Below, piece by piece: positions 13,601-62,562 of a stretch of DNA of 64,000 nucleotides. Within the stretch, counting starts at the first letter, position 1. Each line of letters starts with the position of its first letter. Made by a program: the position numbers and the translations under genes. Where the stretch lies: the NCBI GenBank assembly GCA_965153285.1, contig OZ229114.1; one strand, written 5' to 3'. This DNA comes from Podarcis tiliguerta (Eukaryota). Below the pieces are notes generated by a model. It was not told the origin of the DNA. It did not search any database and saw only the letters and a list, made by a program, of their open reading frames with translations.

Positions 13601-15112
13601 ATTAAACTTCAGGAGACATTTATTGTATTGTGCTGCTGTTTGTGTTTTAGTCCATTACAGCAAACACATTAAGTGTCCTTTTGTAGCCAGATACATTGTG
13701 GTATAAGCATTTATGGATTAGCTCACTTGAACTGCCATTTTCAGTTGGTAGGTAATACAGTGGTGCCTCAGGTTAAGTACTTAATTCCTTCCGGAGGTCC
13801 GTTCTTAACCTGAAACTGTTCTTAACCTGAAGCACCACTTTAGCTAATGGGGCCTCCTGCTGCCGCCACGCCGCTGGAGCATGATTTGTGTTCTCATCCT
13901 GAAGCAAAGTTCTTAACCCAAGGTACTATTTCTGGGTTAGCGGAGTCTGTAACCTGAAGCGTATGTAACCCAAGGTACCACTGTATAGAAGTGTGTGAGC
14001 ACAGTTGCACACAAACATAACATGTAAGAGAACAATATAAACGCTGGGCAGAGGTCTATGGAATACAAGCATTTTCATGGACTAGAGTCCACTCCATCAA
14101 ATGCTATGGGGAATCTTCATCTGGCAGATAGACACATGCACGCAAGAGACATAATTTCACGCAGTGGGCCTCAAAAGCTACAAAATGAGTAAACTACTAT
14201 TTGTATCTCCTTGTTAATGTGTTTGAACTGTTACATTTCTTTAGTCAGTAGAGGCTAGAAAATAGTACTTTTACTTTTAGTGGCGCAAATGCACGTGCTA
14301 TATAAATTCTGGCTCAGAATTGGGGAGCTGAGCCTGTGACCCTTTCCAGGTTTTGCCTTAGAGGCATTCCTGAGTACAGTCGCAAGCCTCTCAACATACT
14401 CTCATAGTGACAGAGAATGTTGTAAGCTGCCTTGCCCTTAAGAATAAAAATCATCTATTCTCTTTTAACAGCATGCGGTATTTTGACAGGGCAGCCTTGT
14501 TTGTTGAAGCTTGTCTCAACTATGGTACAATTGAAGTCAACGAAGATGCAAATATCCTTTTTATCCAGCGACTGAATACAAGAAGTCTCTTAAATAGGAT
14601 TGCTTTGGGGGTTCTGTACTGTGTAATGTGTGTTTCAACTGAATTACTCATTTTGAGAGAAGAAAAAAATATTCATTGTTGAGGGAAGGGATAACATTTT
14701 CCCCAAAATGATATGGAAGATCCAGGTGATTATAAGCAGAGAGTTAAGTGAAAAATAGCACAAGTAGTATTGGGCATTTTCATGTTCAAGAGCCAAGTAT
14801 TCCTCTCAGATAGTGCTAGCTTATTTAATTTAATTTAAATTAATTTGAATCGCTTTCTAGAGTCATTATGATTCTGTTTTGTGGGGGATGGGACAGAAGA
14901 GGTCTGGTAGCTGGTTGTCTGTTTACTCACTTCACTCTGTGCATTCCTTAACCCACACTTTACAAAAACTCATCCATGCGATATTTGCAGACTATGCCAG
15001 AAGCCTGAAGACTCTGGGGTTTAAACAGGCTGCTACTTTATTTGCCTCAAAAGCAGGACCAGCTGGTAAAGATCTATTGAATGAACTTGAACAGCTGAAA
15101 GAAGAAGAATGA
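1526..15112 (+). CDS. WDR11: WD repeat-containing protein 11, C-terminal 514 aa; spliced, 13 exons in window (probably equivalent to human exons 17-29), 5' part outside window
   Basis: Join 1526-1632,2520-2634,3586-3757,5698-5806,6565-6627,7916-7981,9524-9701,10325-10420,10618-10783,11566-11663,12636-12781,14472-14551,14964-15112 gives 1545 nt, one open frame from GSMGSITCIAWKGD to KDLLNELEQLKEEE*. It is colinear with the human WDR11 C-terminus as I recall it. Eleven GT-AG introns plus one AT-AC intron. Confidence 0.97.
2147..2311. mobile_element. Non-autonomous DNA transposon (hAT-like), same family as 26684-26855
   Basis: Shares ggtgctgctgaaattt...cactg 3' end with 26684-26855 and ~33410-33470; flanked by direct repeat ATGCTTC (2140-2146/2312-2318). 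Confidence 0.6.
2520..2634 (+). CDS. WDR11: WDR11 coding exon (GIPTHRGWVRKIRFAPGKGNQKLIAMYNDGAEVWDTKE)
   Basis: Polypyrimidine tract + cag acceptor, GAG|gtcagt donor, 115 nt, phases match neighbours. Confidence 0.96.
3586..3757 (+). CDS. WDR11: WDR11 coding exon (VQMVNSLRTGRNVNFRVLDVDWCTSDKVILASDDGCIRVLEMTMKSACFRMDEQELT)
   Basis: ttttcag acceptor, G|gtatgg donor, 172 nt; lies within ORF 3568..3822. Confidence 0.97.
4273..4647. mobile_element. Tc1/mariner-superfamily (pogo/Tc2-like) MITE with GC-rich internal duplication
   Basis: TIRs CCGTATTTTTCG / CGAAAAATACGG, TA on both flanks (4271-72, 4648-49); internal ~90-nt unit repeated (about 4394-4482 and 4512-4599). Confidence 0.85.
5698..5806 (+). 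CDS. WDR11: WDR11 coding exon (EPVWCPYLLVPRASLALKAFLLHQPWNNKYSLDISH)
   Basis: Long pyrimidine tract + tag acceptor with an upstream actaac branch-like motif, AT|gtaagt donor, 109 nt. Confidence 0.96.
6565..6627 (+). CDS. WDR11: WDR11 coding exon (NYPENENVKNLLQEQLHSLS)
   Basis: ttgcag acceptor, AA|gtaagc donor, 63 nt, phase 2-2. Confidence 0.95.
7571..7732 (-). mobile_element. tRNA-derived squamate SINE (Squam3-like), 5'-truncated
   Basis: Reverse complement has a B-box (GGTTCAATCC) and ends ...TAAGGCAGCTTCCTGTGTTC; similar copies at 30375-30612 and 43490-43640. Confidence 0.75.
7916..7981 (+). CDS. WDR11: WDR11 coding exon (DIRKLLLDPEFTLLQRCLLVS)
   Basis: tcttttcttag acceptor, AG|gtaaca donor, 66 nt. 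Confidence 0.95.
8729..9230 (-). mobile_element. CR1-type LINE 3' fragment, degraded
   Basis: cataagaag...gatcagacc...catcctgttctcacagtggcc...gggaagtccacaagcagg pattern recurs at 16103-16347; resembles squamate CR1 3' ends. Confidence 0.65.
9247..9452 (+). mobile_element. Old tRNA-derived SINE (MIR/Squam2-like)
   Basis: A-box tggtgtagcggtt, B-box ggtttcaaatccc, ctctcagcctaacctacctc core, AT-rich tail. Confidence 0.65.
9524..9701 (+). CDS. WDR11: WDR11 coding exon (LYGDESELHFWTAAAHYLH...PLDICYDILCENSYFQ)
   Basis: ttttgccag acceptor, CAG|gtattg donor, 178 nt. Confidence 0.96.
10325..10420 (+). CDS. WDR11: WDR11 coding exon (KFQLERVNLQEVKRSNYDHTKKCTDQLLLLGQ)
   Basis: tttgcag acceptor, CAG|gtttgt donor, 96 nt. 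Confidence 0.96.
10618..10783 (+). CDS. WDR11: WDR11 coding exon (TDRAVQLLLETSAENPYYYCDSLKACLVTTVTSSGPSQSTIKLVATNMIANGKLA)
   Basis: tttcctag acceptor, G|gtgaac donor, 166 nt. Confidence 0.97.
11038..11323 (+). mobile_element. BovB (RTE clade) LINE 3' fragment
   Basis: Encodes RT C-terminal remnant YFGHLMKREDSLEK...RGRQGMRWLD...WRVLVHGVTKSR; (AAC)n tail; TSD AATAGAG at 11031-11037 and 11324-11330. Confidence 0.9.
11566..11663 (+). CDS. WDR11: WDR11 coding exon (EGVQLLCLIDKAADACRYLQTYGEWNRAAWLAK)
   Basis: ctttttcag acceptor, AAA|gtaggc donor, 98 nt. Confidence 0.96.
12636..12781 (+). CDS. WDR11: WDR11 coding exon (VRLNPEECADVFKRWVDHLCSPQINQKSKAILVLLSLGCFVRVAEMLH)
   Basis: ttgcag acceptor, AG|gtcaaa donor, 146 nt. 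Confidence 0.96.
13058..13550. mobile_element. Tc1/mariner-superfamily MITE (same TIRs as 4273-4647, different interior)
   Basis: TA-CCGTATTTTTCG...CAAAAAATACGG-TA; subterminal taggacgca motifs. Confidence 0.85.
13758..13983. mobile_element. Tigger/pogo-like MITE (CAGTGGTACCTC family)
   Basis: TA-CAGTGGTGCCTC...GGTACCACTG-TA; near-identical copies at 26450, 50516 and a variant at 59076. Confidence 0.85.
14472..14551 (+). CDS. WDR11: WDR11 penultimate coding exon (MRYFDRAALFVEACLNYGTIEVNEDA)
   Basis: ttttaacag acceptor; ends at U12-type donor A|ATATCCTTT, 80 nt. Confidence 0.95.
14552..14963 (+). other. WDR11: U12-type (minor spliceosome) AT-AC intron, last intron of WDR11, 412 nt
   Basis: 5'SS ATATCCTTT (14552-14560), branch consensus TTCCTTAAC (14944-14952), 3'SS TAC ending 14963; splicing restores the frame EDAKKLIHAIFADY. 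Confidence 0.95.
14964..15112 (+). CDS. WDR11: WDR11 terminal coding exon (KLIHAIFADYARSLKTLGFKQAATLFASKAGPAGKDLLNELEQLKEEE*)
   Basis: Follows AC acceptor; TGA stop at 15110-15112. Confidence 0.96.
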
Positions 15113-16094
15113 CAGCTCTTAAGCGAACCACTAAAAACTGAGATTTCCCATCAGATGTAATCATCAGTGAAGTAACTCTTTTAAAAGACAATGAAGGGGG
15201 CTTCTTTATGATGAAAAATACAGTTTGGTCACAGTAGAAATTGGAAATGCTGAATGTCATGTGTGGGCAGAATTTTCTCCTAATTTGTAGAGATAATGAG
15301 TTAAGGAAAATGTCTGAATTTCTCTTAAACCAAAATTTAAGTGCCCATAAGAGCTTTTAGCTACTTAAGGTAAAGAAATGATTCATCTTCTGGTGTTTTT
15401 GAATGAAAAGTACAGAGCCAGGAGAAGTTCCAACATTTTGCAACCCCCAAGCACCCATGTCACATGATCTGACATTTCCAGCAGAGTCTCTTACAATGAT
15501 GCAGATGATATTGGGATTCAGTCCTGCATTCTAGCATTCTCTGTGGCTTTGTGAAAAGGAACATACATTTCAGTTTGTACACTGCTTCACTCGTTCTGCT
15601 AAATATATCACTGCTCCATGCAACATCTAAGCAGCTTGCTCACTTGATACTGGAGATGACCTGGTATTTCATCTCAAAGTGAGCTTCTTCAAAAAGGGGG
15701 AGACTCTTTCACCCAAAAGCATGGGAGCTATGTAATTCCCAGAGCTTGTCTGACCAGTCTTCCTTACCAGTTGAGGAAAAGCTTGGACAGGGTTCCCTTT
15801 TAAAGCATGATCTCTGTGCATGTCTTCCTTCACCCCCTCCCCAAGCCCATGTGACTAGTAAGCTCTGCTGTGGACTTGTTTGCAGCCACTTGGATGAGAA
15901 AATGTGTAATGGGATCCTGCCTGAGCTTTAGCACCTTGTTGGGATGCTTCCCAAGCATTGTCAGGCGAGCTCTGGAATTTCCCAAGTTCTTGCTGTGAAG
16001 GAGTTTGGAGGCCTTCAGAGCCAGCATTTGATATGCTTCCTGCTTGTGTCAAGGAGTCAGGCAAGAGACATAGATGAAATTTCAAGTGGACTTG

Positions 16095-16100
16095 AATAAA
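16095..16100 (+). promoter_or_regulatory. Candidate WDR11 polyadenylation signal (AATAAA); alternative at 16790-16795
   Basis: First AATAAA hexamer I found downstream of the stop codon; usage cannot be determined from sequence. Confidence 0.3.
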
Positions 16101-16102
16101 AA

Positions 16103-16347
16103 ACATATGAACTCTGCTGGATCAGACCAAAGGCCTACCATCTAGCCCAGCATCCTGTTTTCCATAGTGGTTAACCAGATGGCTATGGGAAGCCCACAAG
16201 CAGGGCATGAGTGCAAAAGTCCATTTAATGCTGGACGTTTATGCAGAAGTCCCCATGCTGCCTCCGATTCTGGAGGTTGTATATGGTTATCATGACTACT
16301 CATCATGATAGCTTTAACCTCCTTTTGTCCAATCCCCCTTTAAAGCT
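16103..16347 (-). mobile_element. CR1-type LINE 3' fragment
   Basis: Similar to 8729-9000 (ggatcagaccaaagg...catcctgtttt...gggaagcccacaagcagg). Confidence 0.6.
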
Positions 16348-19300
16348 GCTCATTTCCCAAACAAAACTAAAAATGAGAGTATGCTCTCATGTACATTTTG
16401 CTGAGCTCTCTCGGCTATTTTAAATGCACCTATAACCCTAACCGATTTTAAATGAAACCAAGGTTAAACTTCTGCCAGTTGCGTAATATTGTTTTCTGTT
16501 TGGAACTGGGACAGGGGTCCTTTTTCAGAGCCACATTTCCCTGTGGGGGCAGCCTTGTGGGGCCTGCATGCCAGTGGTTGGTGGGGCCCAAGGCCATAGT
16601 AGGTGGAGCAACGGATAAAACTCGCACCTTCTGTAGTGCAGTCTACATTGCAGCCGTGTGAAAGCCCCACTCCAGCTCTTCTGTCTTTGATCCTACATTT
16701 AGGCAAGCAAGAAACATTATCAAAGTTCAAGGGCTCTTTTTTCGTAGCTTTTTGTGTTTTTTTACAGTCAAACTGTATAAATTTTATGAAATAAATTCCC
16801 ACTAGACAAAACCACTCAAGGTAGCAGGCCAGTGGGGGCCTTGGCCTAAGGAAAGCTCTGAGGGCTAGAGAGGTTTAGAGGGACACATTCGACCTATAGC
16901 TTGAAGGTTCTCTCTCCCTGGTTTAGGAAGACAAGCACAGTTCTATTATTCTAATTCTTTATTTCTCCTTTTGTATTTTGGGCATTATGTGTGTGTTTAA
17001 TTGCACGCTCAAATACATTCTGATCACGGCCTGGTCTCTTTGTGTCGAGGCTGCCATCCCATTCTGTATACATTAAAGCTTTATTAATGAAAAATAATGT
17101 ATCTTTTAAATATTTTATGCAGCGTTTCTCCTCCAGAAAATCAGCATGGGTTTTCATCATCACTGTGGCATAATATGTATGGCTTCCTGAATCACTTTGG
17201 TTCCACGGAGGTATCTATGGGTTCTGTTTTTTTAAGTATGCATCTTCAACGGAAGGGAGCGCACAAAACTTTCCTCCTTTTTGGCTGATGATCTAATCTA
17301 ATGGGTATACTGTGCAAAAAATGTATAGCTGCAGTACAGTACCAAATTCCACAATGCACTCACTCATTCTTAGAGCAGAAAAAGATGTTATCGCTTTGGG
17401 ACAGCTTCTCCCTACATCATTCTTGATCATAGGAGATAGTAGTAAATCATTCAGTGAGAGCAAATGTATATTTCACAAGCAAGCACCCTAAGGGTGGGGA
17501 TGGAGAGTCAGAAATGAGCAAACACATGAAGACTTCATAAAACTTAGGAGGAACATTTCCTACCTACATGGGCTTCATAATAATAAAATATTAATGCAGA
17601 GTACAAGAAAACAGGGGAAACATACACATTTGGTATTTGGTCATTTAAACTTGCCCATATTGTTTTGTTCATTGTGTTTATTATAAGAGTGTATTATCAG
17701 GACCTATTTGCATTCCATGATTTTATAATTTCACTTATGATTTGCACTTAGAAATGGGTTCTAGGTCCTCAAACACAACTTTGTTTGCCAGTTTAAATAA
17801 ATCAGCAACACACAGCAACCACACAGACGGCTGCATTGCCTTTAACAGCTAATGTCACTTTGGCACAGCGAAGGGCGAAATGAAATATCTTATCAAAGGA
17901 AGAACAACAAAATAACCCCTTTTCAAGTTCTTGTGAGAGAAATGCTCATGTTGGTTGGATTTCCAACTTCTCTGGGAACTGGATAATTGGTTTCTGGCAA
18001 TATGTAATGTGCACTGAACTGTGGATTCATTTAACTGTGTTTTGAATGTCTCCTTTGGCTCCTTTTCATACAGATTGCTTCATAGGATCAGTGCAGTAGA
18101 GGATCTTTTGATGCCTCCTCTTTCATCTGGTTGTGATTTCAAAATCGTTAGAATTTTAGATTGAGAATAGTCTTACTCAGATTCTCAGACTTCTTGAAAC
18201 ACAGGGAGTCTTTGCAGTGGTTGAAAGGCTATTGTGGTTAACAAGACTATTTGAGTGGCCTGCCTTCTGTGCTAGTGCTAAACAGTAGTGGTAGCCACTT
18301 GAAGACATCCTAAAACAGTACCATAACTAAGTAGAGATCTGTTCAAAACCCATTTATGATGTCTGGGAGCATTTCTATCTGCAGAATGGTCATAAGCTGG
18401 AGAAATGTATGAAGGTGCTTGCTTACAAATGTTTTCAACCTGCAAGACCTTTCCCGTTCATTTATCTGGCAGGAATTGTAAAAGTCTGGGTGGAGGGATA
18501 TCACAAATTTCAATTGAAGCATCAGATCTGTGGGCATATCTTTCTACATGCATGAAAATGCTGCTTCCATTGAAATTAACAGGGCAGCTCACAGGAGAAA
18601 TACCTCTATCAGAAAAACACAGATCTAGGATGTGATGACTGTATGATCGTATCTTTATTTCTTTGGTTCACAGTGGCATTTCCCCCCACATCTATTTTTT
18701 GTATAGCAGGCCAAGTTATCTCTTAGAAATACTGGCTGGGGCAAAACATCATTATATGTGATTTGCGCTCATGAAAGCTGGTCAATTCAAAACAGTGCTT
18801 GTTGAGTGAATAATGTTCAGAAAACTGATTACCCTGGTTTTGATAATTTGCTCATTTGTTAGTGGTTTGTCAGTATTCAAAATTTTTGTAGTCTAGTTTT
18901 TCCATATATCTTCTAGTCTCTTAAATTTCCTTTCCCTTTCTTTTCTCCTCCTTATGAAAGACATGTCTCTGTTTTTAGGAAGCCTGTAAGAAACCCTTTT
19001 TAATTCAATTGACACACAATTACTTAAAGTTGCTCAGTAGTCTCCAAATTTGTGGACGTATTATTTTAATCTAAACCAAGAGAACATTGCCAGCGGCAAA
19101 CCTATTCACAGTGGAATTTGTTATGTGGCATTTATAATAAGCAAAATTGATGCCATTGCTTATATACATGGAAAACTGTAAATTATAATGTCTTGAAGTG
19201 TTCTCAATACATTTTCCTCAACACATTTCACTTGTCATAATATGCATTCCTTTTAGACAATACAGGAAGTGTGCAACTCCTACCAACTCACTTTTGAAAC

Positions 19301-19762
19301 ACCTTGCGGGTCTTTGTGTGGGGTTTTTTAAGTGTGCTACTGTCACATCACTGCATTCAGTGTCCCCTTGCAAGCTGTAGACAATGACTTGAAGTAGGAG
19401 ACAGGAAGGAAGTGCTAAACATGATACTGCATTGAAAGTCAACACAGCAATGTCCTGGTCCATTGGTAAAAAGAAAATATGTAATAACTTGGCCTTGGGG
19501 AAATTCACAACAGAACTGGCTTGAGGCTTTAACTTTTAGGCTAAGCCACATAACATACTGTCAGCCATGCTCTTGGTAGACTCCATCATTAAGACATGTA
19601 TAGCGGCAGCAGTCTTTTTGTAAAAACAAGGCTGTGCATTTGTCACTCTAGAATTTCACATAGTGATAGTTAACATTTTTTAAATCAGTACCATCATGTT
19701 TGGAAATTGTTGACGTTGAGAGGAGCCTTCTTACACTGGGTTTATGTGCTTCACAGCATGAT

Positions 19763-19845
19763 CTGGTGCATGTTTACTCAGATGTAAGCCCCACTGTGTT
19801 CAGCTGGGTCTACTCCCAACTAAATATGCACAGCATTACAGCCTT
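19763..19845. mobile_element. ~90-bp palindromic MITE; related copies about 6801-6883, 13561-13635, 63260-63350
   Basis: Shared tactcaga.gtaagcccca...tactccca core with dyad symmetry. Confidence 0.55.
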
Positions 19846-21155
19846 AAAGTTTGTATATTTTGCACAATATGAAGTGCCCCGTCGATTCCTTGTACAAAGA
19901 TGGGGGGGAAATCATTGTAAAATGCTTTTTGTTGTTGTTAAGTCATGGAAAAGTTACTAAAATTTAGTTTCAAAAACAGTTAAGTGTGTTGTGATGTAAT
20001 CATAGAAATTGTAGATGTACCCTGATATTGTACAGAGGTACTTAGTGAATGTGTCATTCACGTAACTGTGGCATAAGCTTTTGTGTGTTATATCTGTTTT
20101 CGTCTATCTGTAAGCCATTGGCTGAGTTGCTGTGGTATCACAGATGCAAGAAACTGTCAACACAGTGTTGACAAGCAATGTTCTTCCTCAAAGAAAGAGA
20201 TCAGTTTGGGAGAAAGCATGCAGAGGCTAGGGACAGGAGCAAGTAGGGAAGCTTTAGAACTGGAAAGTGTACAAACTACTTAAAACAAAAGAATCAATTG
20301 GAAATTTTCTCCGTTCTACAATGGCTACATTGAACTCTCCTGCTGCCCCTAGTGGTGTGTAAAAGGTATAGCAGGTGTGGAAAATCATTATTAACAATTC
20401 AGTTGCCTGGCCACTGGTAATCTATTCACCCACATGGAGCACATGAAAATGAGCTTTCGTGTACTAAATGCTTTTACACTTTCCTTTATGCCCAAACATA
20501 TGCTGCCAGCATGTAATAGCTCCCTTTTCTTCAAAATAAGTGGATAAAATTCATAACTGCAAGAGAGAGGGTTGTGTTGCTATGAAGTGTAAATAGAGAT
20601 TCCTCTGAAGGCAGGCTGGTGACAGGTTAAGTCATTCTTTTCTATTTCAGTTCGGCTTCACCTTTGACAATGATCTATTGGTTCTGACAAGCTGCCATAA
20701 GATTACTCTTCCTCACTGCAGATCTTGGTGGGAGCAAGGTATGGGAGGAAATATGTATCCAGATGAGGCTCAAATGTGATCAGAAATATGAATGCTGCTT
20801 ACAGTGGAGAGTACTGACCTTTCTCAGTTCTTACATACTGCAGAGCTGTCTTGAGTAACCCATGATGTGTTGTGCTACAGTTAGACTGAATGAAATGGAA
20901 CGGCTAGATACTAAATTGAAAAAATTAATACTTGCAAGGCTCAACTGACAGCAATAAAGAACCAGGCCTTTAGCATCAGCAGCAGTCCTATGGAATGCTC
21001 TACCAAGAGATTCAGCAGTTGCCTTCTATTTCAACTGTAAACACATGCTGAAAATGTCTGTGCCAGGCGTATGCAGGCAATAGTTAATGGTCTCTAATTT
21101 TAATTTTTTACTTTAAAAAATACTTAGAGACTATAAATTTTGATTTTTATGATAT

Positions 21156-21329
21156 TTGTTGTTGTTGTTGTTTAGTCGTGTCCGACTCTTCGTGACCCCA
21201 TGGACCAGAGCACGCCAGGCACTCCTGTCTTCCACTGCCTCCCGCAGTTTGGTCAAACTCATGTTGGTAGCTTTGAGAACACTGTTCAACCATCTTGTCC
21301 TCTGTCGTCCCCTTCTCCTTGTGCCCTCC
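21156..21329 (-). mobile_element. BovB (RTE clade) LINE 3' fragment
   Basis: Reverse strand encodes EGTRRRGRQRTRWL...LREAVEDRSAWRALVHGVTKSRTRL with an (AAC)n tail; homologous to 11160-11323. Confidence 0.9.
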
Positions 21330-23341
21330 ATATAGCAACATATTAATATTTCTCTTAATGTAGAAATGTTGGGAACAGCAAAATGTATAGCATGTTACTG
21401 AACTTAATGGGACCTGGTGACAGCACTCACTTAAACCTTACAAATGAAACTCTGGTTCCCATTGTATTGAGATAATGAGAGCTGTAGGAATACTTGCATT
21501 CGGTACCCTTAGTAGCAATGATAAATGTCAGCTTTCATTTTAGAGGCCTCAGAGTGCATGGTGGAGAAGTGTAAGTCGTCCCCCCAAAATTGGATTAATA
21601 TGTAGCTGAAAGAAAAAGTTCCTAAAAGATGGGGGGGCATTACACTCTTTCACTGTGGCAGAGGTGAGTCTCAGGAGACCTTTTCTGACAGAGCTGTTAG
21701 ACAGTGGAACAGACTTCCTCAGGAGGTGGAGAACTTAACTTATTAAAATAACAACCAGTTTTAAGTTGTTGTCTGGAACAAAAAAAGCAAGAGTGACTCA
21801 ACTTTGGTTGATGAAATCTGAGCACTAGTGATGCGGAAAGAGCTGTTCTGGAAGAGCCGCCCCTCATGTTTCCTCTGAATTATTTCCTGCTACCAGCTTG
21901 TCTTCCATTCAGACCTCTCATTATCTCATTATAGTCAAATTAATTGCAATGGGTGTTCTTAAACGTTGTTGTTCCTACTTTGCAAAACCACAAGCATCCT
22001 TCTTAAGGAACAATCTAAGCCGTTCATGACAACATCCAGCAGGCATTTCATCAGCAGGGCTCATTTTATCCTTTGTTTTATTCTTTTCTTTTTTCTTTTT
22101 TACAGAGCCTTCCAGACTCGGAGGAAGTAATTTGCCAGATTATTGTTCTTTTGCTCTTGTTTTCATGGCTTTGCCCCCCGCCCACCTTTCCTCTCAGGTA
22201 CTTCTTATCCCAAACATGAGACACGGGCACTAAACAAACTTGCTCTTGTTTGACTCACTTAGACTGGGTTCCCTGACCTGGAACTTGGCCAAGGCAGACT
22301 ACATAATGTAAAGATATGAACCCGCAAGGCATAAAACCCAGGAAGTGAGCTACAAAGGCTTCCAAAAATATGGTGGGTATACTTTACTAATTTGACCTGC
22401 CTCCCATTCTTCTCTCACACATCTTATGCTGTACAGCAGTCAATGCCCAAAGCCCCAGGCCAATTTATGCTGCGATCCACACCCAGAGCTGCTGCTCAAG
22501 GCAAGAACGTGTAAACTAACAGAGCTGTGTCCCCATTCAAACAAATGGGAAAGCTTTTCTCATGAGGTAGCTTAAGCATGTGCATCATCAGGGACCCTGT
22601 GCCCATCAGGAATCCTTTGACTATGTGATTTCTGGTTTAGAGCTATCCTTTTTATTTTCGTTCGTTTCCTTCTAAGACCAAGTTGAGCCCCACAAAATGC
22701 CCATTTTCAATTGCTTTTCTCCTGCACTTGGCAGAACCGTTCAAATGCACACCTCTTCTCCTCCTCTCCACCCTCAGTACGGCAGCAATTGAGATGCTGC
22801 CTTTTCCAGTTAAGGAATCAATCCATAAATTATTCCTGTGTCCAGATAGCTTGACACACGTGTCACTCACTTCACTGGAATGCATTGTTCTGAGGCTGGA
22901 ATTGTACGCTTGATATGCTTGCTTCAGTTCCATAGAAGACTTTTGCTAAACAATAACTCTCCATGTGCAAGATTTAGAAATACCATGAAACCACATTTTT
23001 TCCTGCATAGCTAATAGTCTGAATTCTTATTTGTACATCACAGCCCTGAAAGGGCTGCACAAGTAGAAAGGGTGGTGACTTGTGCTGGCTTCCCCTTGTT
23101 TAGGGGTAACTTAGTCAGCACCAAGTATCCCCCAAGCTGTGTACCTGATCCTTCAGAGGGAGTGTAAATCCCATGAAGAGCAGGCAACCTCCAATCCATC
23201 TGGTCTAGGGAACCACCCACTAACAATGCTTAAGTCTTATCTAGATTGAGCTTCATTATATTGAATGTCATCCAGTCCATTACTGAGGCAAAACAATGAT
23301 CCAGCTCTTTCACTTCCTGGGATAGAAGTTAAAACTTTTCT

Positions 23342-23683
23342 CTCTAAATGGCCTTGGTCCAGTATACAGTACCCGAAGGAGCATCTCCACCCCCACCGTT
23401 CAGCCCGGACACTGAGGTCCAGCTCCGAGGATCTGCTGGCAGTCCCCTCACTGCAAGAAGTAAGGTAACAGGGAACCAGGCAGAGGGCCTTCTCGGTAGT
23501 GGCACCCCCCCCCCGAACGCCCTCCCACCAGATGTCAAGGAAATAAACAACTATCTGACTTTTAGAAGATACCTGAAGGCAGCTCTGTTTAGGGAAGTTT
23601 ATATTCTGTTGGGAGCTGCCCAGAGTGGCTGGGGAAACCCAGCCAGATGGGTGGGGTATAAATAATAAATTATTATTATTATT
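23342..23683 (+). mobile_element. L2-clade LINE 3' fragment
   Basis: Frameshifted remnant RTLRSS...RAFSVVAP...NALPPDVKE...FRRYLKAALF typical of the L2 RT C-terminus; tail cagccagatgggtggggtataaataataaa(tta)n. Confidence 0.8.
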
Positions 23684-25793
23684 ATATTATTCTATTACCT
23701 TTGATGATTGCTTCCCTATTCGGTTGTGCTTTTATTTTGCAGGTATGAATTGACCATTTTAAGACAAAAATGAAGAAAACAATGTAGCAATCTTGTCCCA
23801 ATATTTACTTACATGTGTGACCTGTCTTGTGCCCTACTTTGTAGCAGAAGGAATGTTATCCGTAAATAAAAGAAGTGTGTTACGTTATATTTTAGATTAC
23901 ATAATTATAGTATCATTAGGAAAGATGGTACTGTTCCATTACCGTCTGACACCTAGCACAATGTAGTCCGATCTTTGACTGACTCTTCTTTGGAATAAAT
24001 GTGCATATGATATTTACTGTTCAAAATAGTTGCTTTCAGTGAAATGCACTAACCTGTAAATGATAACCATAGCTCCTTTAGTAAAGACAGTCACAGACAT
24101 TCTTACATATTTAATCCAGCAGAGTGCAGCAGAGATCAGGGAATCATAATATGGAATACTTCATTATATCAGGGAATAGTGATTGTTGTGGGGAACAGAA
24201 ACAAGCTCAGTAGTTATTTTCATCTAAAAGTGTGCTTAATGATATGGCAGCCCCAATATTACAATTTAGCAGAATAGCTGCAGTGTTGTGGCTTTTTGTG
24301 GAAAAAATACTATTTAAAATTAGAATAATATGCATAGGGCAATTTGCATTTGGAAAAATTTAGTTTGCATCAGAAAAATTGCTGGTGCCCTAGAATAATT
24401 AATTAACTTGTTTGTTTTTCTTTGTATTTAGTAAACAAAGCTAAAATGTTTGAAACTGTCAATTTTGCCTAATATTGTGTTTGCAGTTGGAAACCATTCA
24501 TTGATATTAAAGAACTTATGAAATCAGGAGGGAAATATTTTGAAAAATATAGCAGTAGAAAATGTTCTGCCCCCTATCACTTGATAAAATATTTTCTTGA
24601 AAATTCTGCTTTTGTGTTTAACTGTCTTGAAAGGTAAAAATCCTATTGCTCTGCCAAGAGAAACCGGAGACTACTTTTTCTTAAAACTGTGGAAATAATT
24701 CAGAATGAAATGATTAAAGTAGTTTAATGTGAACTGATGGATTATTGGAGAACATTTGGTTTTCCATGAGACCTCAGTAACATCCTGTCAAAATTCTGAG
24801 GACAGAGATGTTAAAAGCATAGATGATGAAGGCATTTGGTTCAAAAGTAGTGAACAAACAGAGGTTTCTTGATTCCAAATTGAAAAGCAAACTACTTTAA
24901 AAAAATCATCTGACCTAGGCTTGAAGAACCTATCTAGAACTTGAAATGTGTGTTACTTAGATCAGTTTACATATCTTACTGACAGAAGAAAGGAGGGCAT
25001 GAAAAATTTATGACAGGAAAGACTTGGCGTGTCAGAGTTTTGAAAGACACAGATCAACAAACTTGCTCGTACATGTTTGTGTGTTCTTTCCCCCTCTCAA
25101 CTTCTGGTGAATTGTTGCTCCAGAGACTGATTTTACAGATTTAAACCTTTTCAATAAGCTATGACAAGGTAAGAGCCTAAGTGACCTCAGGTGAAAGAGA
25201 CCGGTTACTGCTGGGAGATATATTTGTTCAATAAATCATCATTTCAACAGCCAGGTTGCTTTAACTTTGCCAGCCCTTACATCACCTGTTAAGAATGCTG
25301 CCTTGGCTGCGGAAATTCATTTTTAGGAGAAATTCAAAATGCTGGGGCTGTCCTTTTCTTCCTGTCCATTTCAGCATACAGTGTATTATTTAAGGCCTGG
25401 AGTAAGATTGTTCTGAAGCCATAACAGGATGCAGAGAAGCTCATTTAGGAGTGCTACTAGGCAGCAGCACCTTAAAGCATTCCACCGTAAAGTCATTAGG
25501 GGACCACATTTCTCTTACAGTTTGCATTATGCTTCTCTCTGTGTGTCATTTGAGCTCTCTGTGTTTCTCTTAAACGAGAACCAACTGGGAGAAAGCCACA
25601 TCATCGGGATGAAGAAGAAGAAAAAATCTCCAATATTGCTTTGGAAATTTCACAATCAAAAGCACATTTTCGAAGCCCAGCCACTGACAGTGTGAACTAA
25701 AATAGGAAACATATGACATAGGGAACATGACAGCCGAAAAGAGAAAGTTGAACATTGTGACTATTTCATTATTTGTCTTCAAACAGTCTAGAG

Positions 25794-25961
25794 CAGCCTC
25801 CTTCAATAGAAGGCCCTTCAGATGATGCAGATTACAAGGCCCACCAACCCCAGCCAGCATGGCCACGGACAACCTGAGTTCAAATCCTCACTCAGCCTGT
25901 GTAGTCAGCTGATGGGAACTAAAGTGCAAAACAGCTGAGAGCACCAGGTTGGGGAAGGCAG
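25794..25961. mobile_element. Small hAT-like MITE (cagcct...ccaggttggggaagg family); relatives about 27746-27841, 30627-30760, 39771-39872
   Basis: Recurring gatggg...gtagtccaacaacatctggag...aggtt motif with inverted ends. Confidence 0.55.
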
Positions 25962-25964
25962 CTG

Positions 25965-25967
<3 letters not shown>

Positions 25968-26023
<56 letters not shown>
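25968..26023. repeat. (TC)n(AC)n compound microsatellite
   Basis: Seen directly in the sequence. Confidence 0.95.
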
Positions 26024-26449
26024 TTCAGAAAACTGTCCTAGCACTGCTAATAACTTTTTTTAAAAGATTATTTTGCCAATACATAAATCTAGTCACTAAC
26101 TAAAGACTGTGCCACCAGCTTTTTGCCAATGCATGCTTGTACACGAGGAGCCACGTCTTGAGTGAGAGCTGAGCTAATGCATTCACTTTCTACTGCAGCA
26201 GGAGGAGGACTGGGAAATCTTCCTTCCAATGGTTGACATGTGTCCTCTTTTCCCAGGACGCATCCTCTTTTTCATGGGTAGGTAAAGTGAGAGTAGTCAT
26301 ATCGATCCATAGTTAAAAATAGAAGTCAGCAAACGTGTCCTCTTTTTTGCTCTTCAAAATACGGCGACCCTATTAGGTGAATAGAACTGGCTTTAAACAG
26401 GGGAGATGAAAGCTCAGATCTGCACTCGCCTGATGTCAGCTACAGAGTA

Positions 26450-26663
26450 CAGTGGTACCTCGGGTTAAGAACTTAATTCGTTCTGGAGGTCCGTTCTTAA
26501 CCTGAAACTGTTCTTAACCCAAGGTACCATTTTAGGTAATGGGGCCTCCCACTGCTGCCGCACAATTTCTCTTCTCATCCTGAAGCAAAGTTCTTACCTG
26601 AGGTACTATTTCTGGGTTAGCGGAGTCTGTAACCTGAAGCGTCTGTAACTCGAGGTACCACTG
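26450..26663. mobile_element. Tigger/pogo-like MITE (CAGTGGTACCTC family)
   Basis: TA-CAGTGGTACCTCG...CGAGGTACCACTG-TA. Confidence 0.88.
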
Positions 26664-26683
26664 TACTGGCATTAACCAAACGA

Positions 26684-26855
26684 CAGAGGCAGAATTAGGG
26701 GCATGTGACCAGTTCGATCACACTTGGTGCAGAGCCTCAGGGGTGCTGCAGCGGTCCACAACTATTTTGTAGAATGGAGTACGATAGGAGGGGGTGCCGA
26801 TTTTTGACGTCACACGGGGTGCTGCTGAAATTTGAGACCCTAAGGTCTGGCACTG
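26684..26855. mobile_element. Non-autonomous DNA transposon, same family as 2147-2311
   Basis: Imperfect TIRs cagaggcagaattaggg / ccctaaggtctggcactg. Confidence 0.6.
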
Positions 26856-29800
26856 CAGACTAGATCAGGAATGGGAAACCTCAATCCCTTCATGCTTCTC
26901 TATGTGGTCCTTGGAGTCCTCCCCAGGCTATACCCCACACTGGTCCCGCTTTGCACCCTCATATTTTTGCCTGGCTGGAATCAGTCCTTTGAGTATAGAC
27001 AGTAGACTACATTGGGTTTGATTGATAAATGGCTTGAGCTGTTATAAAACAGCTTCCTGGGTTCTTTATACTCTAAAGGCATCAGATTCATTTGCGTTTA
27101 CACTCCATCAGAGTGTAGCTGTACAGAGCAACAAGATAAAAAGTAAAAACGCATAAGGATCATAGACAATGTAAAATGGCAACTCATTCTACTTTCTGGT
27201 GCAAAAGAAGAGAGAGGAGGAGGGTGCCCCTAAGTTAGTGGTGGGACCACACATTGAAGGGATCACTTTGAGAGTTAATATGAGCACATGGATAAATGGT
27301 TTTGTTAGCTGAGAAAGACAGTACGCGTGGAAGTGGTATCAAAATACAAGGCTGTGCTAATATTTATACAGCTGTAATATAAACAACCCCCTGTTCCAGG
27401 TCAAGTAACTTTTTGGGTCATGTCCTTATCTTTTAAATATCTGTTTGGGCATTAAATAATCTCCCCTAAAAATCTTAAAATGACACAAGATGGCAGTGTT
27501 TCAGAGCATTGCTTGAGTAGTATGCTATATAGCTATAGGGTTTTTTTAGATGTCCATCTCAGAAAATCCTCTCTGTCCATGTGACCTGGGATACAGCTTA
27601 GCTTGATCATGGAGGTTTGTATAAACAGAACATTTCACCAGTGTATGCCACATAATTGAGACTGATGGGCACCGGCAGGGTGCGATTGTGACAGGCTGTA
27701 GCCCATTCTGGTCAAATGGCCCCAGGTTGTTTAGATGCCCTACAGCAGCTTTCCCCAGATCTGTGCTCCTCCAAATGTTGGACTGAGGATATCAGTTGTA
27801 GTCCAACAACAATATGGAGTGCACTAGGTTGGGGTAGACTGACCTAGAGACATAAATATGCAAACATGCTAGTATTTATGTTCCTGCATTTGTAAACTGA
27901 ATCCCAAGGAATGAAAATCTCTTCAGGAAATTAGTAGTTCCACCAAGGGACTAGGGAACAGTTGATCCGAGAAAGATGTGCTTAATTGCCTCACTGTCTC
28001 TGCATGCTATAGGCCACCCTTGTGATGTCCATGCATATAATATGACTGAAAGTCATTAAGTGCGTGATTTTTCCATCCATCATTAACTTGTAACTGAACA
28101 GCATTGAATGTTTTTTTTTTTAAGAAAACCTAAAACCTTTTATTCCCCTCTCATATGTATTGCCATCAGTTCATTTTATTTGCTACTTTCTTTACAGCAC
28201 TTTGCAGCATATGTTACCCAAAGGCATCAGAGCAAGCTATAAGAGTTAATGTAGATCATAAAGCATGAAATATACTATCTAAACTTGCCCAATGATTTAT
28301 TCTTGGCCACTAAATGCCATCTAAAAGAAAATTATTGTATGCAATTTCTGCTTGGGCCACAAGTTTGTACTTTTTTCAGTCTTCAGGGAAAGGCTATTCT
28401 TCACTTGTGGAACAGCTATTAAGAAACCTCGCTATAAACCTTTCTTCTATATACAGATATTTTCATGTGTGGGGAAGGGAAGCTATGTTCTCCCCCCCCC
28501 CTTTTTTTTTTTTTTACCTCTGAGGCTTCCCTGATAGTGTAGTGTCCATGCAAATAAATTTGCTGGGAAATATAAAGTCTCACCCCAACACATACACCCA
28601 GTCTGTTTGCAATCCCATTTCAAAATGTGGCTCTGTAAATATCATGAGCATCTATGTATTAGCATTTATAATATAGCACTAGATCAGAAACACAATTCCC
28701 CTCCCCTCTCTCACACTCAATACCAGTACAGTTTTTGTCTATGTTTAATATTTTCCCTCACTTATATAGATATATATATTTAAAAGGTTAGTACAAGACT
28801 CCTGCTATTATTTTATGGGTACTGTATTTCACATCTTTCAAAAACATTTTCATTGCTCATCTGCTAAATTCGCCACTTTGGTATACATTTAACATAACTT
28901 CAAAGTAGAAAAATCGTTTGTCCTAGTCATTGAATGAGGATGGGAAAATCACACTATTTGTAGTAGAATGAGAAGCAGTACAAATAAGGGGGTACACCAG
29001 CTGAAGTTGTGTTCATTATCAAATCATGTTTAATAGTATGTTCATTAATGAATAATGTTTATCAGTGCATTGCATGGGGAAAGCTATAGTTACTACCCCC
29101 ACAAAAACATATTGGCCACAGATGGCAGCCATATTCTTCCCTCACCTTCACTGTCCCACTGCTTTAACTTCCAAGGCATTTCAAGGAAATCCAAGATGGT
29201 GGTTGGAAGCTACTTAGCTGCAGAACACTGGAAATTTGTTTTAAAGGAATCAGACGCTGGAAGAGGTGCCTATAGAAGGAAGTCTATAGAACAGCACTTT
29301 GCTGTGAATCCCCTTAACTCTTGATCATGCCCTGTCACCATACTTACATTCTAGGATCTGGCTATGGCATTTGCCTTACTGTTGAATCAGCTGTTCAAAC
29401 ATATCCTGTCCATTCACAGTTTGTCAACTTGGCTTTGTATCTTTCAGGAGAAAGTGTTTCAAATCATTTTGTATTAATTGGGCATTCCCCAACTCCCCAA
29501 AGGTACTTTCCCCTTTTTTTCTTTTATTGTTATTGAACAAAATCTAGGAATGCTTTCAAACTGTAGCTGTTTTCTATTTTAAAACATTTTTAGCCATTCC
29601 CCCACGTAATACAAAATAGAAGAGGTATTTATGAATGATGGCTGCAGCATGAACCAAAAAACTATTCTCTATTAAGACTTGTTATCGCCAGTCCTGGTCA
29701 AATGCCAAACTAAGCATTGCGGCCAGTGACAGTTTTAAGATCTTATATACCTTGGGGGTGGGGGGAGAGCTAAAGAAAGAGTTGACTTATGCTATTAGAA

Positions 29801-30374
29801 ATTGTAGAGTCCCGGGAGCATACAGACTTCCTTTCTCGGCCTGGTGTCCTCAGACTCTGTAGCCTCTACATGACATCATTCCAGTATACAATCCGACTTT
29901 GTCCTTCCAGAACTCCCAACCCACCTGGCGTGGTGTAATATTTGTTGTTGCTCATTTTATGAACTACTACAGCTAGGACCCAACGAATCCTTAATTATAG
30001 TGCAAACTGCTTCTCTGCTACAATGCTTCCTGCCTTTCTCCCCTGGGAATTTGTAGTATTTTCATTGAGGCCAAAACTTGAGTGCAACAGATTTCTTTCC
30101 CTGTAGAGATCGCAAAGCTGTTTATGATGATAATAAGAAAATAATTCTAATATCTCTTGCTGAGGCACGGGAAGGGAATGCGGTTATGTATGTGTTAATT
30201 CTTTTAATACATGCAGTCAGCTGACAACTCAAGTGCCCCTAGTTACGTACAAGCTGCCTTTTCTCTAATGCACCCCCACGTGTCTTGGGTCTATGCATAA
30301 GTGACATAACCACACATGAATGGCTGCAGTTTAGTAGTGGAGCATTGCATAAAAAAGGTTCAAGTTTCAACAGT

Positions 30375-30612
30375 AGGAACATAGGAAGCTGCCTTATACA
30401 GGGTCAAATTATTGATCCATCTAGATCTAGAGTGGCTGGGGAAACACAGCCAGATGGGCAGGGTACAAATAATAAATTATCATAAACATCATCACGTACA
30501 GGTAGCAGCTCTCCAGGGTTTCAGGCAGGGGACCCTCCAAGCCCTACCTGGAAATGCTCTACCTGGGACTTTCTGTATCCGGAACTGATGCTGTACCACT
30601 GAACTATGGCCC
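30375..30612 (-). mobile_element. Squam3-like SINE interrupted by an L2 3' tail (30429-30483, + strand)
   Basis: Both halves match the 7571/43490 family; the insert matches the 23620-23680 tail. Confidence 0.7.
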
Positions 30613-31008
30613 TCTATTAGCATCTCCATGGAGGGATTGGATAATCTCCTGTGACCCTCCAGAGGTTCTTGGACTCCAACTTTCATCAGCCATGGCCAGT
30701 TGGCAGGGATGATGGGTGCTGTAGTCCAACAACATCTGGAGCAACATAGGTTTTTCTATCTTTGAATTAAATGATTATTGTAACACTTCAGTAGTGACTA
30801 TTTAAAATCAGATGCTTATAGGCTTCCCTTAGGCAGCTAGTTGGCCGCTTTAAGAACAGGTTGCTGAACTAGATGAGCCAGCGGGGCTCTTCATACATTC
30901 TTTTCACCCTACCCCAATTATGTGTGCACACAATAATGTGTAATTGATAGGGGTAGATTCATTTTATGGCTTGCTAATAATTTTGTTATTATGGCATGAT
31001 GCTATATG

Positions 31009-35067: not shown

Positions 35068-35464
35068 CAACCTTACAAGTTGTGATGATTTGCTATGCAG
35101 TAGGCAAAAACCAAATGGCCCCAGCCAATCAGCCAGATGGACAAAATTCCTACTGGGCCCCTGCCCCAAGAACAGACAACCCCATGACAGGCATAGCAAG
35201 GTCAAAGTGAACAACCCTAAATATGGGGGGGGGGGGGAGAGACAGGCAATCCGATGCACGGGCAAAGAGAGGAAGCCCTAGCCTCGTGCAAGGAGTTTTA
35301 GCATTTCTGGCTGTCAATCAACAAATGGCAACATTAACTTCTTCCCAACGACAAGGGAAGCCCAATCGCATCAGTAGCCAACGATCATTTAGCCCGCCAC
35401 ACAACTTTGGAGTGTCCTGTCGGCCCCCACTGCAACACGTGCTCTCCATGAAGGAGAACACGCT
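35068..35464 (-). mobile_element. Partial copy of the 60065-60841 repeat family (possibly DIRS/Ngaro-type terminal repeat)
   Basis: 35068-35153 differs from 60455-60539 at about 4 positions; both share the terminal gcaacacgtgctctc...ggagaacacgct hairpin. Confidence 0.6.
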
Positions 35465-59031: not shown

Positions 59032-59075
<44 letters not shown>

Positions 59076-59079
<4 letters not shown>

Positions 59080-59289
59080 GGTACCTCGGGTTACAAACGC
59101 TTCGGGTTACAAACTCCACTAACCCGGAAGTAGTTACCTTGGGTTGTGAACTTTGCTCCAGGATGAGAATGGAAATTGTGCGGTGGTGGCGGGAAGCCCT
59201 GTTAGCGAAAGTGCACCTCAGGTTAAGAATGGTTTCAGGTTAAGAACGGACCTACGGAACGAATTAAGTTCGTAACCCGAGGTACCACT
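59076..59289. mobile_element. Tigger/pogo-like MITE variant (inverted relative to the other copies) flanked by (AC)n and (TG)n
   Basis: TIRs CAGTGGTACCTCGGGTTAC / GTAACCCGAGGTACCACT; (AC)n 59037-59076, (TG)n 59291-59316. Confidence 0.85.
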
Positions 59290-60064
59290 TTGTGTGTGTG
59301 TGTGTGTGTGTGTGTGTCGAGAGAGAGAGAGAGAGTTAGTACTGAGGCAAATGAGTAACTGGAGATGTTTTGTTGACAGATTTGCACTGGTACATATTCT
59401 GGAGCAATAAACATTTTCCATTTTTGAGGTGTTTGTAGTTCTGTGTAACCTGACTTCTACACCACAGGGCGGCTTTTTGTATTTTAAAGGATAATCATTT
59501 ATTAGAAACTCTGACTTGCTCATAAACTATTCAAAGAAGGGACTCTGGGGCTTTGCTCATTAAAAAACGTGCTGACACTGTTGGTCACTTTGTTCTGGGA
59601 AGTTTTATGCTGCAGTCAGAGTAAGCATTCCATGCGTGGTTTGCAAAGAAAAATGGCCAATTGATGAAGTCAGGTGCCAGTCAGAGGCTGAGGTGAAGAG
59701 AGTGAGACCTCAGCATGGGAGAAAGACCTATTTTACCCATTAAAATGACTTAGTACGTTGTCAACAGTGGAAGTGATGCTATTTCAGTTGGGTCCCCAGA
59801 GCCATCATCTGGCTGCGGCACTCTGAGAATGCAGGACGACAGGGCAGTTACAAACGCACCTTACTTTCCTTAGGAGGCAACAGTGGTATTAAAGCACAGT
59901 TTAAACATTTACATCTTTAAAATGCAAAAGCACAAAATCAGTTTTCTCTTTGTTTCCCCATCCCCCATGTCCATGAATTTGCTCTATTTGTCCCCATCCC
60001 TCAATATATTTGTCAGCCTAATATCTTCTCTGTTGCGTGTTGAGTCCCACAATGCCACCCCCCA

Positions 60065-60841
60065 AAAAATTCACACTTCACACATCAATTTTTTGTTTAG
60101 GTTTTTGGCATAATTTTGGCCACAACTTTATTCAAATACAAAAAATGTGAGTGGTTGCTTAGGCATTGGTTATGACTATCTGTCCTTGCCCTCAGGGACA
60201 GAGCTGGTCTTCCGGACTCCAACGGAAGCCAGCGTGGGAAACAATTATTGGGTGAGAAAATGAAGCTGGGCATCAGTCCCTCACTTCTCACCCTCATGTT
60301 CCTGTGGGGCTTGCACGGCCCAAGTCCGATGCCAGGGACAAGGACGAAAATAATGGCAAGCCCCTGGATTCCTTTAACGGAATTCCCTTTCCACATCATT
60401 TGGAGGGGTAGGCACTTACCCCTCCAAGCACCAATTTAACCAATGCCTAACCGCCAACCTTACAAGTTGTGACGATTTGCTACGCAGTAGGCAAAAACCA
60501 AATGGCACCAGCCAATCAGCCAGATGGCAAAATTCCTACCATGCCCCCGCACCAAGGCGGGCGACACCTAGACAGGCATAGCAAGGTCAAGCTATCATAA
60601 ACCACCCTATTAAAGGGAGGGAGGGCGGGTGATCCGCTGCAAAACGGCCAAGAGGCCGTGCCAACGTCTGTCCCCTGTATTTATAGACTCTGACCCCTCC
60701 TCCAAATTGGCAACAATCAATACTCCCCAGCAACCCAATTTAACCATTTACCGGCTGGGTTCCTTTCAAAACTGCCAAGTCATGGCAAGGTGGCCTGTTC
60801 CCCCAACCGCAACACGTGCTCTCTTTTAGGGAGAACACGCT
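60065..60841 (-). mobile_element. LTR-like repeat (possibly DIRS/Ngaro-type) with CCAAT, TATA, structured body and poly(A) signal
   Basis: Minus strand: CCAAT (60706-60710), TATAAATA (60678-60685), AATAAA (60127-60132), GT-rich downstream tract; partial second copy at 35068-35464. The family assignment is a guess from remembered motifs. Confidence 0.55.
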
Positions 60842-62562
60842 ATGTGCTAGTTTTCCACGTGAAGGTTCTTCTTCCTCTCCTCCTCCAACCCATTGCAGTC
60901 TGCAGTGCTATTGCCTGAACTCTTGTTATTTGTAAGATCTATGCCTCAGTGGGGATTAATCTCAGGGTAGCCATGTGTCCACCACACTTCAACAATTATC
61001 ATATTATGTAACACCTTGTTTTTAACAATGTTGATTCCTTTTTAAATTCAGAATACCTGCGTTATTCATGTTAAATAGTTTGATATAATACATTGTATGG
61101 TATTTCCCCCCCTCACATTCTAAGGTTCTCCTAACACCTTAATCCGTTGCTTTAATAAGGGAGACATTAAAACAAGGTGCAAACATTGAAATTTGAAATC
61201 CACTACACTCAGGGAATAGACGCAGGGAATAGCGGCTTTCACAGTGGCTCCTGCGGCAGAAATGGGACAAAGCACCGGGGGCGGAACAAAATCAGGAGCA
61301 CACAAGGGATCACTTTTTTTAACACTGTAGGTTCCAGGGTTTGGATCCTGAGTTGAGGGAGCTTTTGCTTCTCTCCTTCCGTCCCTCCTCCGCTTGCCTG
61401 CCTTCTTCCCATCCTCTCCCTGCCTATGGTCAGCGCCAGACTCTGCTCTGTGGGGCTTTCGGTGTCGCTCCTCCTCCTCTGAGGAGACCCAAGGAGACTC
61501 CTGAGGGCGGCGGACCCGCTGCTGGGCGCCCCTGCTGGGCGGGCGCCATGACGCATGGCGCCACTCAGCCAAATGGAAAAGACAGCCCTGTATGGAATTG
61601 CTACCACAGGATATATCAAAGGCCACAAGCTTGGTTGGACAAATTAATGGAGAGTAACTCTTGTCAGTGGCTACTAGCCATGATGGCTATAATAGCACAG
61701 TACAGGTATGCTCTGAATACCAGCTACTGAGGATTACAGAGGTTATCCTTCATCTAACCACCAAGACAGAGTTCACAATAAAGCAAAACTTGATGGGGTT
61801 TCTGTAGAGAGCAATTCTCGAGCCTATTGCAAATCCAACTGATACTGAAATGGTAACACGGAAACAATTCCTGAACCAAAACACAGTTACATAAAAAAAA
61901 GCAAGTGCCTATGATTGCATTTGTTCTTTGTGCTCTGATGACAGTTGTAAAAGTTGCACATGCAACTGCTAGCCATCTGCAAAACCCACCAGAGATTGCA
62001 GACTGGCCTCTGCAGTAATGTTTTCAGTATTATAAAAGATAATAAAGCTATAAAGAGGCAGAGGCAGCTGCTCGGATTCTCTGCTCTCCAGGTGTTGTTT
62101 ATAGGCAGGCAAACAGGCACCTTTCAGAATACTATGCTTTAAGGTCACTCTGACTGCAGGCAGTTGTCAGAGATTAAAGGTGAGCTGAGTGCAGATGAAC
62201 GTGAACAACATATTTGCCATATGTGCCTGGGGAACTTTGGCATGTTTTTTGTTCTTAGCATTCCTGTGCAAAGCCACAGCTTTCCATATTGGATGGTAAA
62301 GAATGCAGTATATCATTTGCAGTGCAATTCTATACATGCCCACTCAGAAGTAAACTTTGGTTTGTTCAATTGGACTTTCTCATAACAACAATGTAAGGAG
62401 AGCCGTGCTGGATGTGACCAAATGACCATCGAATCTTGCATCCCGCCCCCATCCTTTTCTCAGGGCTTACAATGGCTTATGATCTGCCACTCTCAGCTCA
62501 GCTAGCTGAAACCCAGCTGAGCAAGGATGGTGGACTTGTGGTAGAAGATCTCTGGCTGGGCT

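Follow-up and report, generated by a model that had tools for sequence, protein, structure and literature searches.

Segment 60033-60841 on the minus strand of the window (the whole 64-kb stretch of DNA that was analyzed) is one copy of a very abundant interspersed repeat of the lizard, and the repeat family keeps its hairpins, with stems that are constant or changed in pairs while the loops drift. The explanation we consider probable is that this 809-nt block is an inert copy of an abundant, non-coding, retroelement-type repeat, which spread via a minus-sense RNA built as a chain of hairpins. The hairpin at 60486-60540, whose outline resembles an ENE, would be the invariant core of that chain.

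The repeat copy and its surroundings

The window was free of N and of soft-masking. Contigs and reads from four public runs were mapped to 59600-61400, and the full copy of this high-copy, non-coding repeat was recognized by contig depth. The best DNA run (X1, organism A) contributed 5,406 mapped contigs. Summed contig depth ranged from 2e4 to 2.4e6 within 60033-60841, whereas it was only ~77-125 in either flank, and the copies of the repeat number in the thousands. A sequence-only reading of this DNA had taken the stretch for a mobile-element copy, and this was borne out by the sharp edges of the block and by its depth relative to the flanks. In one contig from the best DNA run, 60032 was joined straight to 60842, so that the 809 nt were skipped with 0 shared letters at the joint; the depth of this contig was 41.7, which is approximately half of the flank depth. 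It may represent an insertion-free allele, in which case the copy would be polymorphic and the family recently active.

No target-site duplication was found between the flanks of 60033-60841, as judged from a single locus and a single joint contig. Read on the minus strand, the block begins with AGCG and ends with GCAA. Its ends bear a short inverted repeat consisting of a 7-nt motif (GCGTGTT at the block start, with its complement at the block end) and then four further nucleotides past a small loop; the two ends, if joined, would pair as a 7+4-bp hairpin. A long terminal or internal inverted duplication was also sought in the block and was rejected, the only candidates being a 14-bp repeat with a weak extension and some local palindromes. 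A second, partial copy of the same family lies at 35068-35464 (minus strand) and matches 60455-60841 only, with identities of 88% over a 135-nt core and 81% at its far end, and poor similarity between them.

Several other features were observed in the surrounding DNA. Depth was 4,000-5,000 at 61308-61400, indicating a further repeat ~470 nt past the block on the plus strand, and the open reading frames (ORFs) at 61120-61730 had no Pfam match on either strand. An inverted repeat at 59049-59317, with 50-nt arms that are 96% complementary and outer ends of (CA)n/(TG)n, has related copies at 26451-26665 and 13759-13985 and looks like a MITE-like family adjoining the block. Both strands of the palindromic segment 62569-62720 matched the MIR2863 precursor model (E 4e-4 and 0.014), in each case far under the gathering score; the segment probably forms a long hairpin that belongs to another repeat. 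Finally, the ORF at 9576-9926 (plus strand) matched the DOCK TPR region weakly (E 9e-4, under the Pfam cut-off); this ORF may belong to a DOCK-family gene as an exon, in which case 60033-60841 would be intronic or gene-adjacent.

Module abundance, promoter-like motifs, and transcription

The sequence-only reading had described a self-contained Pol II unit, and every motif that it named was found where it had been placed on the minus strand, namely CCAAT (60710-60706), the TATA box TATAAATA (60685-60678), CCTCTT (60655-60650), AATAAA (60132-60127), an A-rich tract (60111-60088), and a GT/T-rich tract (60088-60065). The layout of these motifs is no rarer than chance: when defined as CCAAT at most 120 nt upstream of TATAAA, with AATAAA 200-1500 nt downstream, it occurred eight times in the 64-kb window.

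Conservation along the block is a mosaic, and depth differs between modules by up to 100-fold. Read as a relative picture, since summed depths are not equal to copy numbers, depth was highest (~31,000 single-copy depths) at 60454-60514, which covers the 3' half of the ENE-shaped hairpin and the part that follows it, was also high at 60088-60209, which includes AATAAA, and at 60332-60392, and was lowest (~270-290 single-copy depths) at 60637-60758, which includes the TATA box and CCAAT. The modules carrying the hairpin and AATAAA (the latter in the highly abundant module 60088-60148) reached ~15,000-31,000 single-copy depths on this relative scale, and the abundance of the family dropped ~25-fold below 60088. 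The same mosaic depth profile recurred in a small run (X15) under another organism label (rho 0.83).

Neither the TATA box nor CCAAT is present in the copy at 35068-35464. Among the best 40 of 244 variant rows, 60684 T>A was found in 77% of the family depth and changes TATAAATA to TTTAAATA. AATAAA is kept in the variant copies visible as loose ends at 60129 and 60141, and it is compatible with N-K in an ORF of another copy (P0001, see below). Because the promoter-like part has the lowest abundance of all modules and is missing from the second copy, a Pol II unit is not what the family multiplied, and that part of the earlier proposal was not upheld. The TATA box and CCAAT of 60033-60841 are not a family-wide promoter; the promoter-like part behaves as the fast-changing U3 side of an LTR, or as a different module. 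Under the retroelement-type explanation, the two motifs would lie in a fast-changing, U3-like part.

These differences in module abundance could also be explained if the block were a composite of two or more repeats, side by side or nested, with 60033-60454 and 60455-60841 independent of each other. The TATA box and AATAAA would then come from different elements, and no single transcript would be intended. In agreement with this, the second window copy stops exactly at 60455, many reads and contigs turn to unlike sequence at 60455 and at 60437-60439, and in several copies internal deletions run as far as joints at 60456 or 60464-60465. However, contigs of summed depth ~8.7e5 cross 60454, indicating that the junction is common in the family; moreover, the whole 809 nt was skipped as a unit in one contig, and long-range pairing joins the left and right parts. 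We regard independent repeats as unlikely, with the qualification that many copies end or change at 60455 and that the block may be composite.

RNA data were taken from two raw-read runs under a related organism label (B), and 6-12% of each run was read. The block received 147 and 127 RNA reads in the two runs, and its flanks received none in either run. Almost none of the block reads were 99% alike, and 73-80% of them continued into unlike sequence. The reads lay on both strands, with an orientation bias that flipped along the block, and no pile-ups of read starts or ends were detected on the block in the two RNA runs. In the single-cell run, RNA depth tracked DNA abundance (rho 0.85). The transcript from 60654 to ~60105 that had been predicted was thus not supported by these two runs of the related organism label, in which block reads came from both strands and had no defined ends. 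The reads look like passive transcription of scattered copies; other tissues may differ. In the stranded run (X23), ~20 reads shared fixed differences (60218, 60245, 60271, 60303, and others) and a single orientation, indicating strand-specific transcription, across 60149-60331, of one diverged copy elsewhere, possibly within a host gene.

A database search with the ORF at 60097-60399 (minus strand, 100 aa) yielded a single relative, P0001, which comes from a 621-nt ENA contig, has 131 aa, and is 51% identical. Both are conserved at their ends and diverged in the middle, and the frame is open in two diverged copies; P0001 is probably a frame that happens to be open in another copy. Pfam gave no match for the block ORF, P0001, or the neighboring ORFs. 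An exact-pattern search of metagenome contigs with two core patterns gave no match, and a 20-mer search of viral contigs gave one chance match (L001), with no similarity beyond it.

Hairpins of the block and their strand sense

The conservation of hairpins was examined in a base-by-base alignment of the two window copies and, for the family as a whole, in one variant table (the best 40 of 244 rows). The hairpin at 60541-60567 (minus strand), directly 5' of the ENE-shaped hairpin, carries compensatory changes in both data sets. Among the best 40 of 244 variant rows, 60542 A>C is paired with 60566 U>G, both being the family majority, and 60548 G>A is paired with 60559 C>U, a CpG pair that was given lower weight. 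In the copy at 35068-35464, the same hairpin contains two two-sided and four to five one-sided changes that keep the pairs. A helix closing the junction around the ENE-shaped hairpin had been proposed and was recovered by folding as a 9-bp helix (60584-60576 with 60485-60477, minus strand) that closes a two-hairpin junction; it shows one G-U to A-U change between the copies, with the pair kept. In the terminal hairpin (60814-60840, minus strand; 10-bp stem and 7-nt loop), the stems are identical in both window copies and the loop differs at four of seven places.

Structure was then predicted from a single copy, so that covariation could not shape the prediction. When the structure was derived from the 60033-60841 copy alone, eight of nine changed pairs were kept in the second copy on the minus strand, compared with three of eight on the plus strand; when it was derived from the 35068-35464 copy alone, the corresponding values were 7/10 and 1/5. 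On the minus strand, the one-sided changes turn G-C or A-U pairs into G-U pairs; read on the plus strand, the same changes would produce A-C mismatches. The fold energy of the core was -51.1 kcal/mol on the minus strand versus -38.2 kcal/mol on the plus strand. Since one-sided changes compatible with G-U pairing occur on the minus strand only, they point to an RNA-level constraint on the core stems in the minus-strand sense, which is the orientation that the sequence-only reading had chosen. The well-supported variants are mostly subfamily differences that passed through active copies, which argues that active lineages needed the stems. If the family spreads, or once spread, through RNA of minus-strand sense, and if this RNA was a chain of hairpins, active lineages would have had to keep the stems, so that stems would stay constant or change in pairs and loops would drift.

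The 550-nt stretch as a whole folded better than shuffled sequences (z -6.1 on the minus strand and -6.8 on the plus strand), and this excess was limited to the 292 nt between the arms of a perfect 14-bp inverted repeat (60450-60437 with 60172-60159, minus strand). The resulting multi-hairpin domain (60159-60450) contains six hairpins closed by the 14-bp stem, including a perfect 11-bp stem with a 6-nt loop at 60400-60427; the inverted repeat, the approximately six enclosed hairpins, and the 11-bp stem were all present as had been claimed. As an 11+6+11-nt palindrome with arms on either side of a short spacer, 60400-60427 is arranged like a tyrosine-recombinase core site, purely as a resemblance. 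The z score of the 292-nt domain was -8.0 on the minus strand and -9.1 on the plus strand, and upon refolding it was -7.2 as RNA and -7.6 as DNA. G-U pairs accounted for 4/96 and 6/94 pairs on the two strands, the rest being Watson-Crick. The predicted folds are therefore equally good on both strands, and no strand is distinguishable there. All 12 well-supported variants in 60159-60450 (best 40 of 244 variant rows) fell at unpaired positions of the minimum-energy fold, in which 66% of positions are paired. Some of these loop variants are adjacent and linked, which reduces them to approximately nine independent events, a number that is still far from chance.

The folding of the 292-nt domain on both strands counts against our explanation and may leave room for a DNA-level role in this part of the block. 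In a purely DNA-level account, the palindromes would be putative protein-binding sites on double-stranded or hairpin DNA, and the RNA shape would be a by-product. Candidate sites would be recombinase or transposase sites (the 60400-60427 palindrome and the joined ends) and a core CCAAT/Y-box with CCAT/E-box-like arms. The near-equal G-U counts on the two strands, the invariant CCAAT-box sequence in the apical loop of the ENE-shaped hairpin, and the insertion without a target-site duplication, with ends able to form a hairpin when joined, are all consistent with such an account. We nevertheless consider it quite improbable, because the one-sided changes in the core keep pairs on the minus strand only, which is not required of a DNA palindrome, and because the minus-strand core fold is the stronger one.

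The ENE-shaped hairpin

The ENE-like outline proposed for 60540-60486 is present on the minus strand, where a 6-bp lower stem is followed by AAUUUUG facing UUUUUG, an interrupted upper stem, and a 12-nt apical loop. Such an outline is no rarer than chance in the window. A descriptor that required a lower stem of 5 bp, four or more U on each loop strand, and an upper stem of 3 bp or longer gave 19 matches in the window, two of them in this repeat family, versus 12.6 +/- 3.5 in 40 dinucleotide-preserving shuffles. Folded alone and compared with shuffles, the hairpin had a z score of -0.59, the 204 nt holding it had a z score of approximately -1, and the isolated minimum-energy fold of 60486-60540 partly closed the U-rich internal loop. 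The stems and U tracts are identical in both window copies, and the best 40 of 244 variant rows contain no well-supported variant in 60486-60540 except a 1-nt insertion at 60527; because the hairpin is invariant, covariation neither supports nor refutes its structure. The hairpin lies in the most abundant module of the family. Its apical loop carries a CCAAT/Y-box-type sequence and is conserved, whereas other loops of the family drift, which hints at a constraint on the sequence and not on the shape alone.

ENEs are known from transposon RNAs, mostly in plants and fungi (PMC7583470, PMC12501189), and the criteria applied here were drawn from these two sources. The ENE of KSHV PAN forms five U-A.U triples, and G-C pairs adjoining its U-rich domain are needed for A-minor contacts (PMC7583470); in Evade, the G-C pairs beside the U tracts are essential (PMC12501189). 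The hairpin at 60486-60540 shares with the ENEs of KSHV PAN, TWIFB1, and Arabidopsis Evade/Copia93 a pair of U tracts facing each other across the internal loop of a stem-loop, and, as in those of transposon-type RNAs, it lies upstream of a poly(A) signal. It differs from them in that the U tracts are shorter (4 and 5 long), with ~2-4 U per strand mostly open in the predicted ensemble. It also has no G-C pairs immediately bordering its U tracts: toward the lower stem, AA on the 5' strand and G on the 3' strand stand between the tracts and the G-C pair, and toward the upper stem the first pair is G-U. Rfam 15, whichever ENE models it includes, returned no ENE, PAN, or MALAT1-type match at E <= 10, either for 5 kb or for the 809 nt alone; the results at this threshold were chance matches only, far under the gathering scores, and the comparison that the sequence-only reading had proposed with such models was thus negative. 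The end of the hairpin is 353 nt from AATAAA, of which the 14-bp stem could loop out 264 nt.

Taken together, these data make a working ENE very unlikely, that is, a hairpin whose U tracts would stabilize a ~550-nt Pol II transcript of the element by clamping its poly(A) tail, or else the genomic A-rich tract, within a U-A.U triple helix. Apart from the outline itself and its identity in the two copies, this idea draws on the position of the hairpin in the module that is highest in abundance and lowest in variation within the family, the minus-sense, RNA-level constraint on the neighboring helices, the conserved AATAAA downstream with a 14-bp stem that shortens the path to it, and the precedent of transposon ENEs. 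On the other side stand the chance frequency of the shape (~12 per 64 kb in shuffles), the Rfam result, the bases parting the U tracts from the lower stem, the small number of U compared with the five triples of KSHV PAN, the 353-nt distance, the apparent constraint on the apical loop at the sequence level, and RNA reads that are sparse, two-stranded, and without defined ends, tracking DNA abundance rather than pointing to an abundant RNA. A modified form, in which a reptile retroelement family numbering thousands to tens of thousands of copies would carry a short, non-canonical ENE and the 292-nt domain would fold away to bring the poly(A) tail to the hairpin, appears just as doubtful. Under the retroelement-type explanation, the ENE-shaped hairpin may instead be a recognition or structural element of the element RNA, with the replication proteins of the parent element or 3'-end handling as candidate roles.

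Element class and meaning for the family

With regard to class, we infer that the block is an LTR-like unit or a unit of a tyrosine-recombinase retroelement. Its resemblance to a solo LTR lies in its length of ~0.8 kb, a TATA box and an AATAAA that share the minus-strand orientation, a variable promoter side with a conserved downstream part, and the short inverted repeats at its ends. A promoter-like part and a poly(A) signal do lie in the same orientation inside the repeat, as in a solo LTR, in a layout that is frequent by chance. In contrast to a solo LTR, the block has no TG...CA ends and no 4-6-bp target-site duplication, its R-like part would be ~550 nt, and the window contains neither an internal region nor a second LTR. 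DIRS/Ngaro elements resemble the block in the insertion without a target-site duplication (seen at one locus), in ends that would pair when joined, and in the RNA-level constraint; the first two features fit a tyrosine-recombinase retroelement unit. Unlike in such elements, no recombinase- or reverse transcriptase-bearing parent was seen in the window, where no transposon-type Pfam match was found among the long ORFs, and the class would be deduced from one locus.

Other classes were rejected. Against a SINE, there was no tRNA, 7SL, or 5S match (Rfam, E <= 10) and no Pol III-type head; against a Helitron, the block lacks TC...CTRR ends and did not insert between A and T; and against a hAT or Tc1-type DNA transposon, there is no 8-bp or TA duplication. 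In the long R regions of HTLV-1 and BLV, RNA folding brings AAUAAA near the cleavage site. The block likewise has a long structured insert (292 nt, closed by the 14-bp stem) between upstream elements and the poly(A) signal, although its AATAAA lies after the structured insert and not before it.

For this locus, 60033-60841 is best taken as an ordinary silent transposon copy, and the motifs in it that resemble a promoter and a clamp should not be taken for a functional non-coding gene. The signal lies at the level of the family, a very abundant lizard repeat with clear signs of selection on RNA hairpins in the form of loop-only variation, compensatory pairs, and strand-specific G-U changes. The most conserved piece of this repeat is the invariant, ENE-shaped core, which has the outline of a poly(A) clamp. 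The conservation of hairpins across the family is genuine, and the ENE-shaped core is a reasonable target for bench work. If clamping proved true, it would be a rare case of an RNA-stabilizing device in a vertebrate mobile element and would broaden the occurrence of transposon ENEs, beyond plants and fungi, to an amniote; if the hairpin does not clamp, it would still be a good candidate recognition site for the copying of the element RNA.
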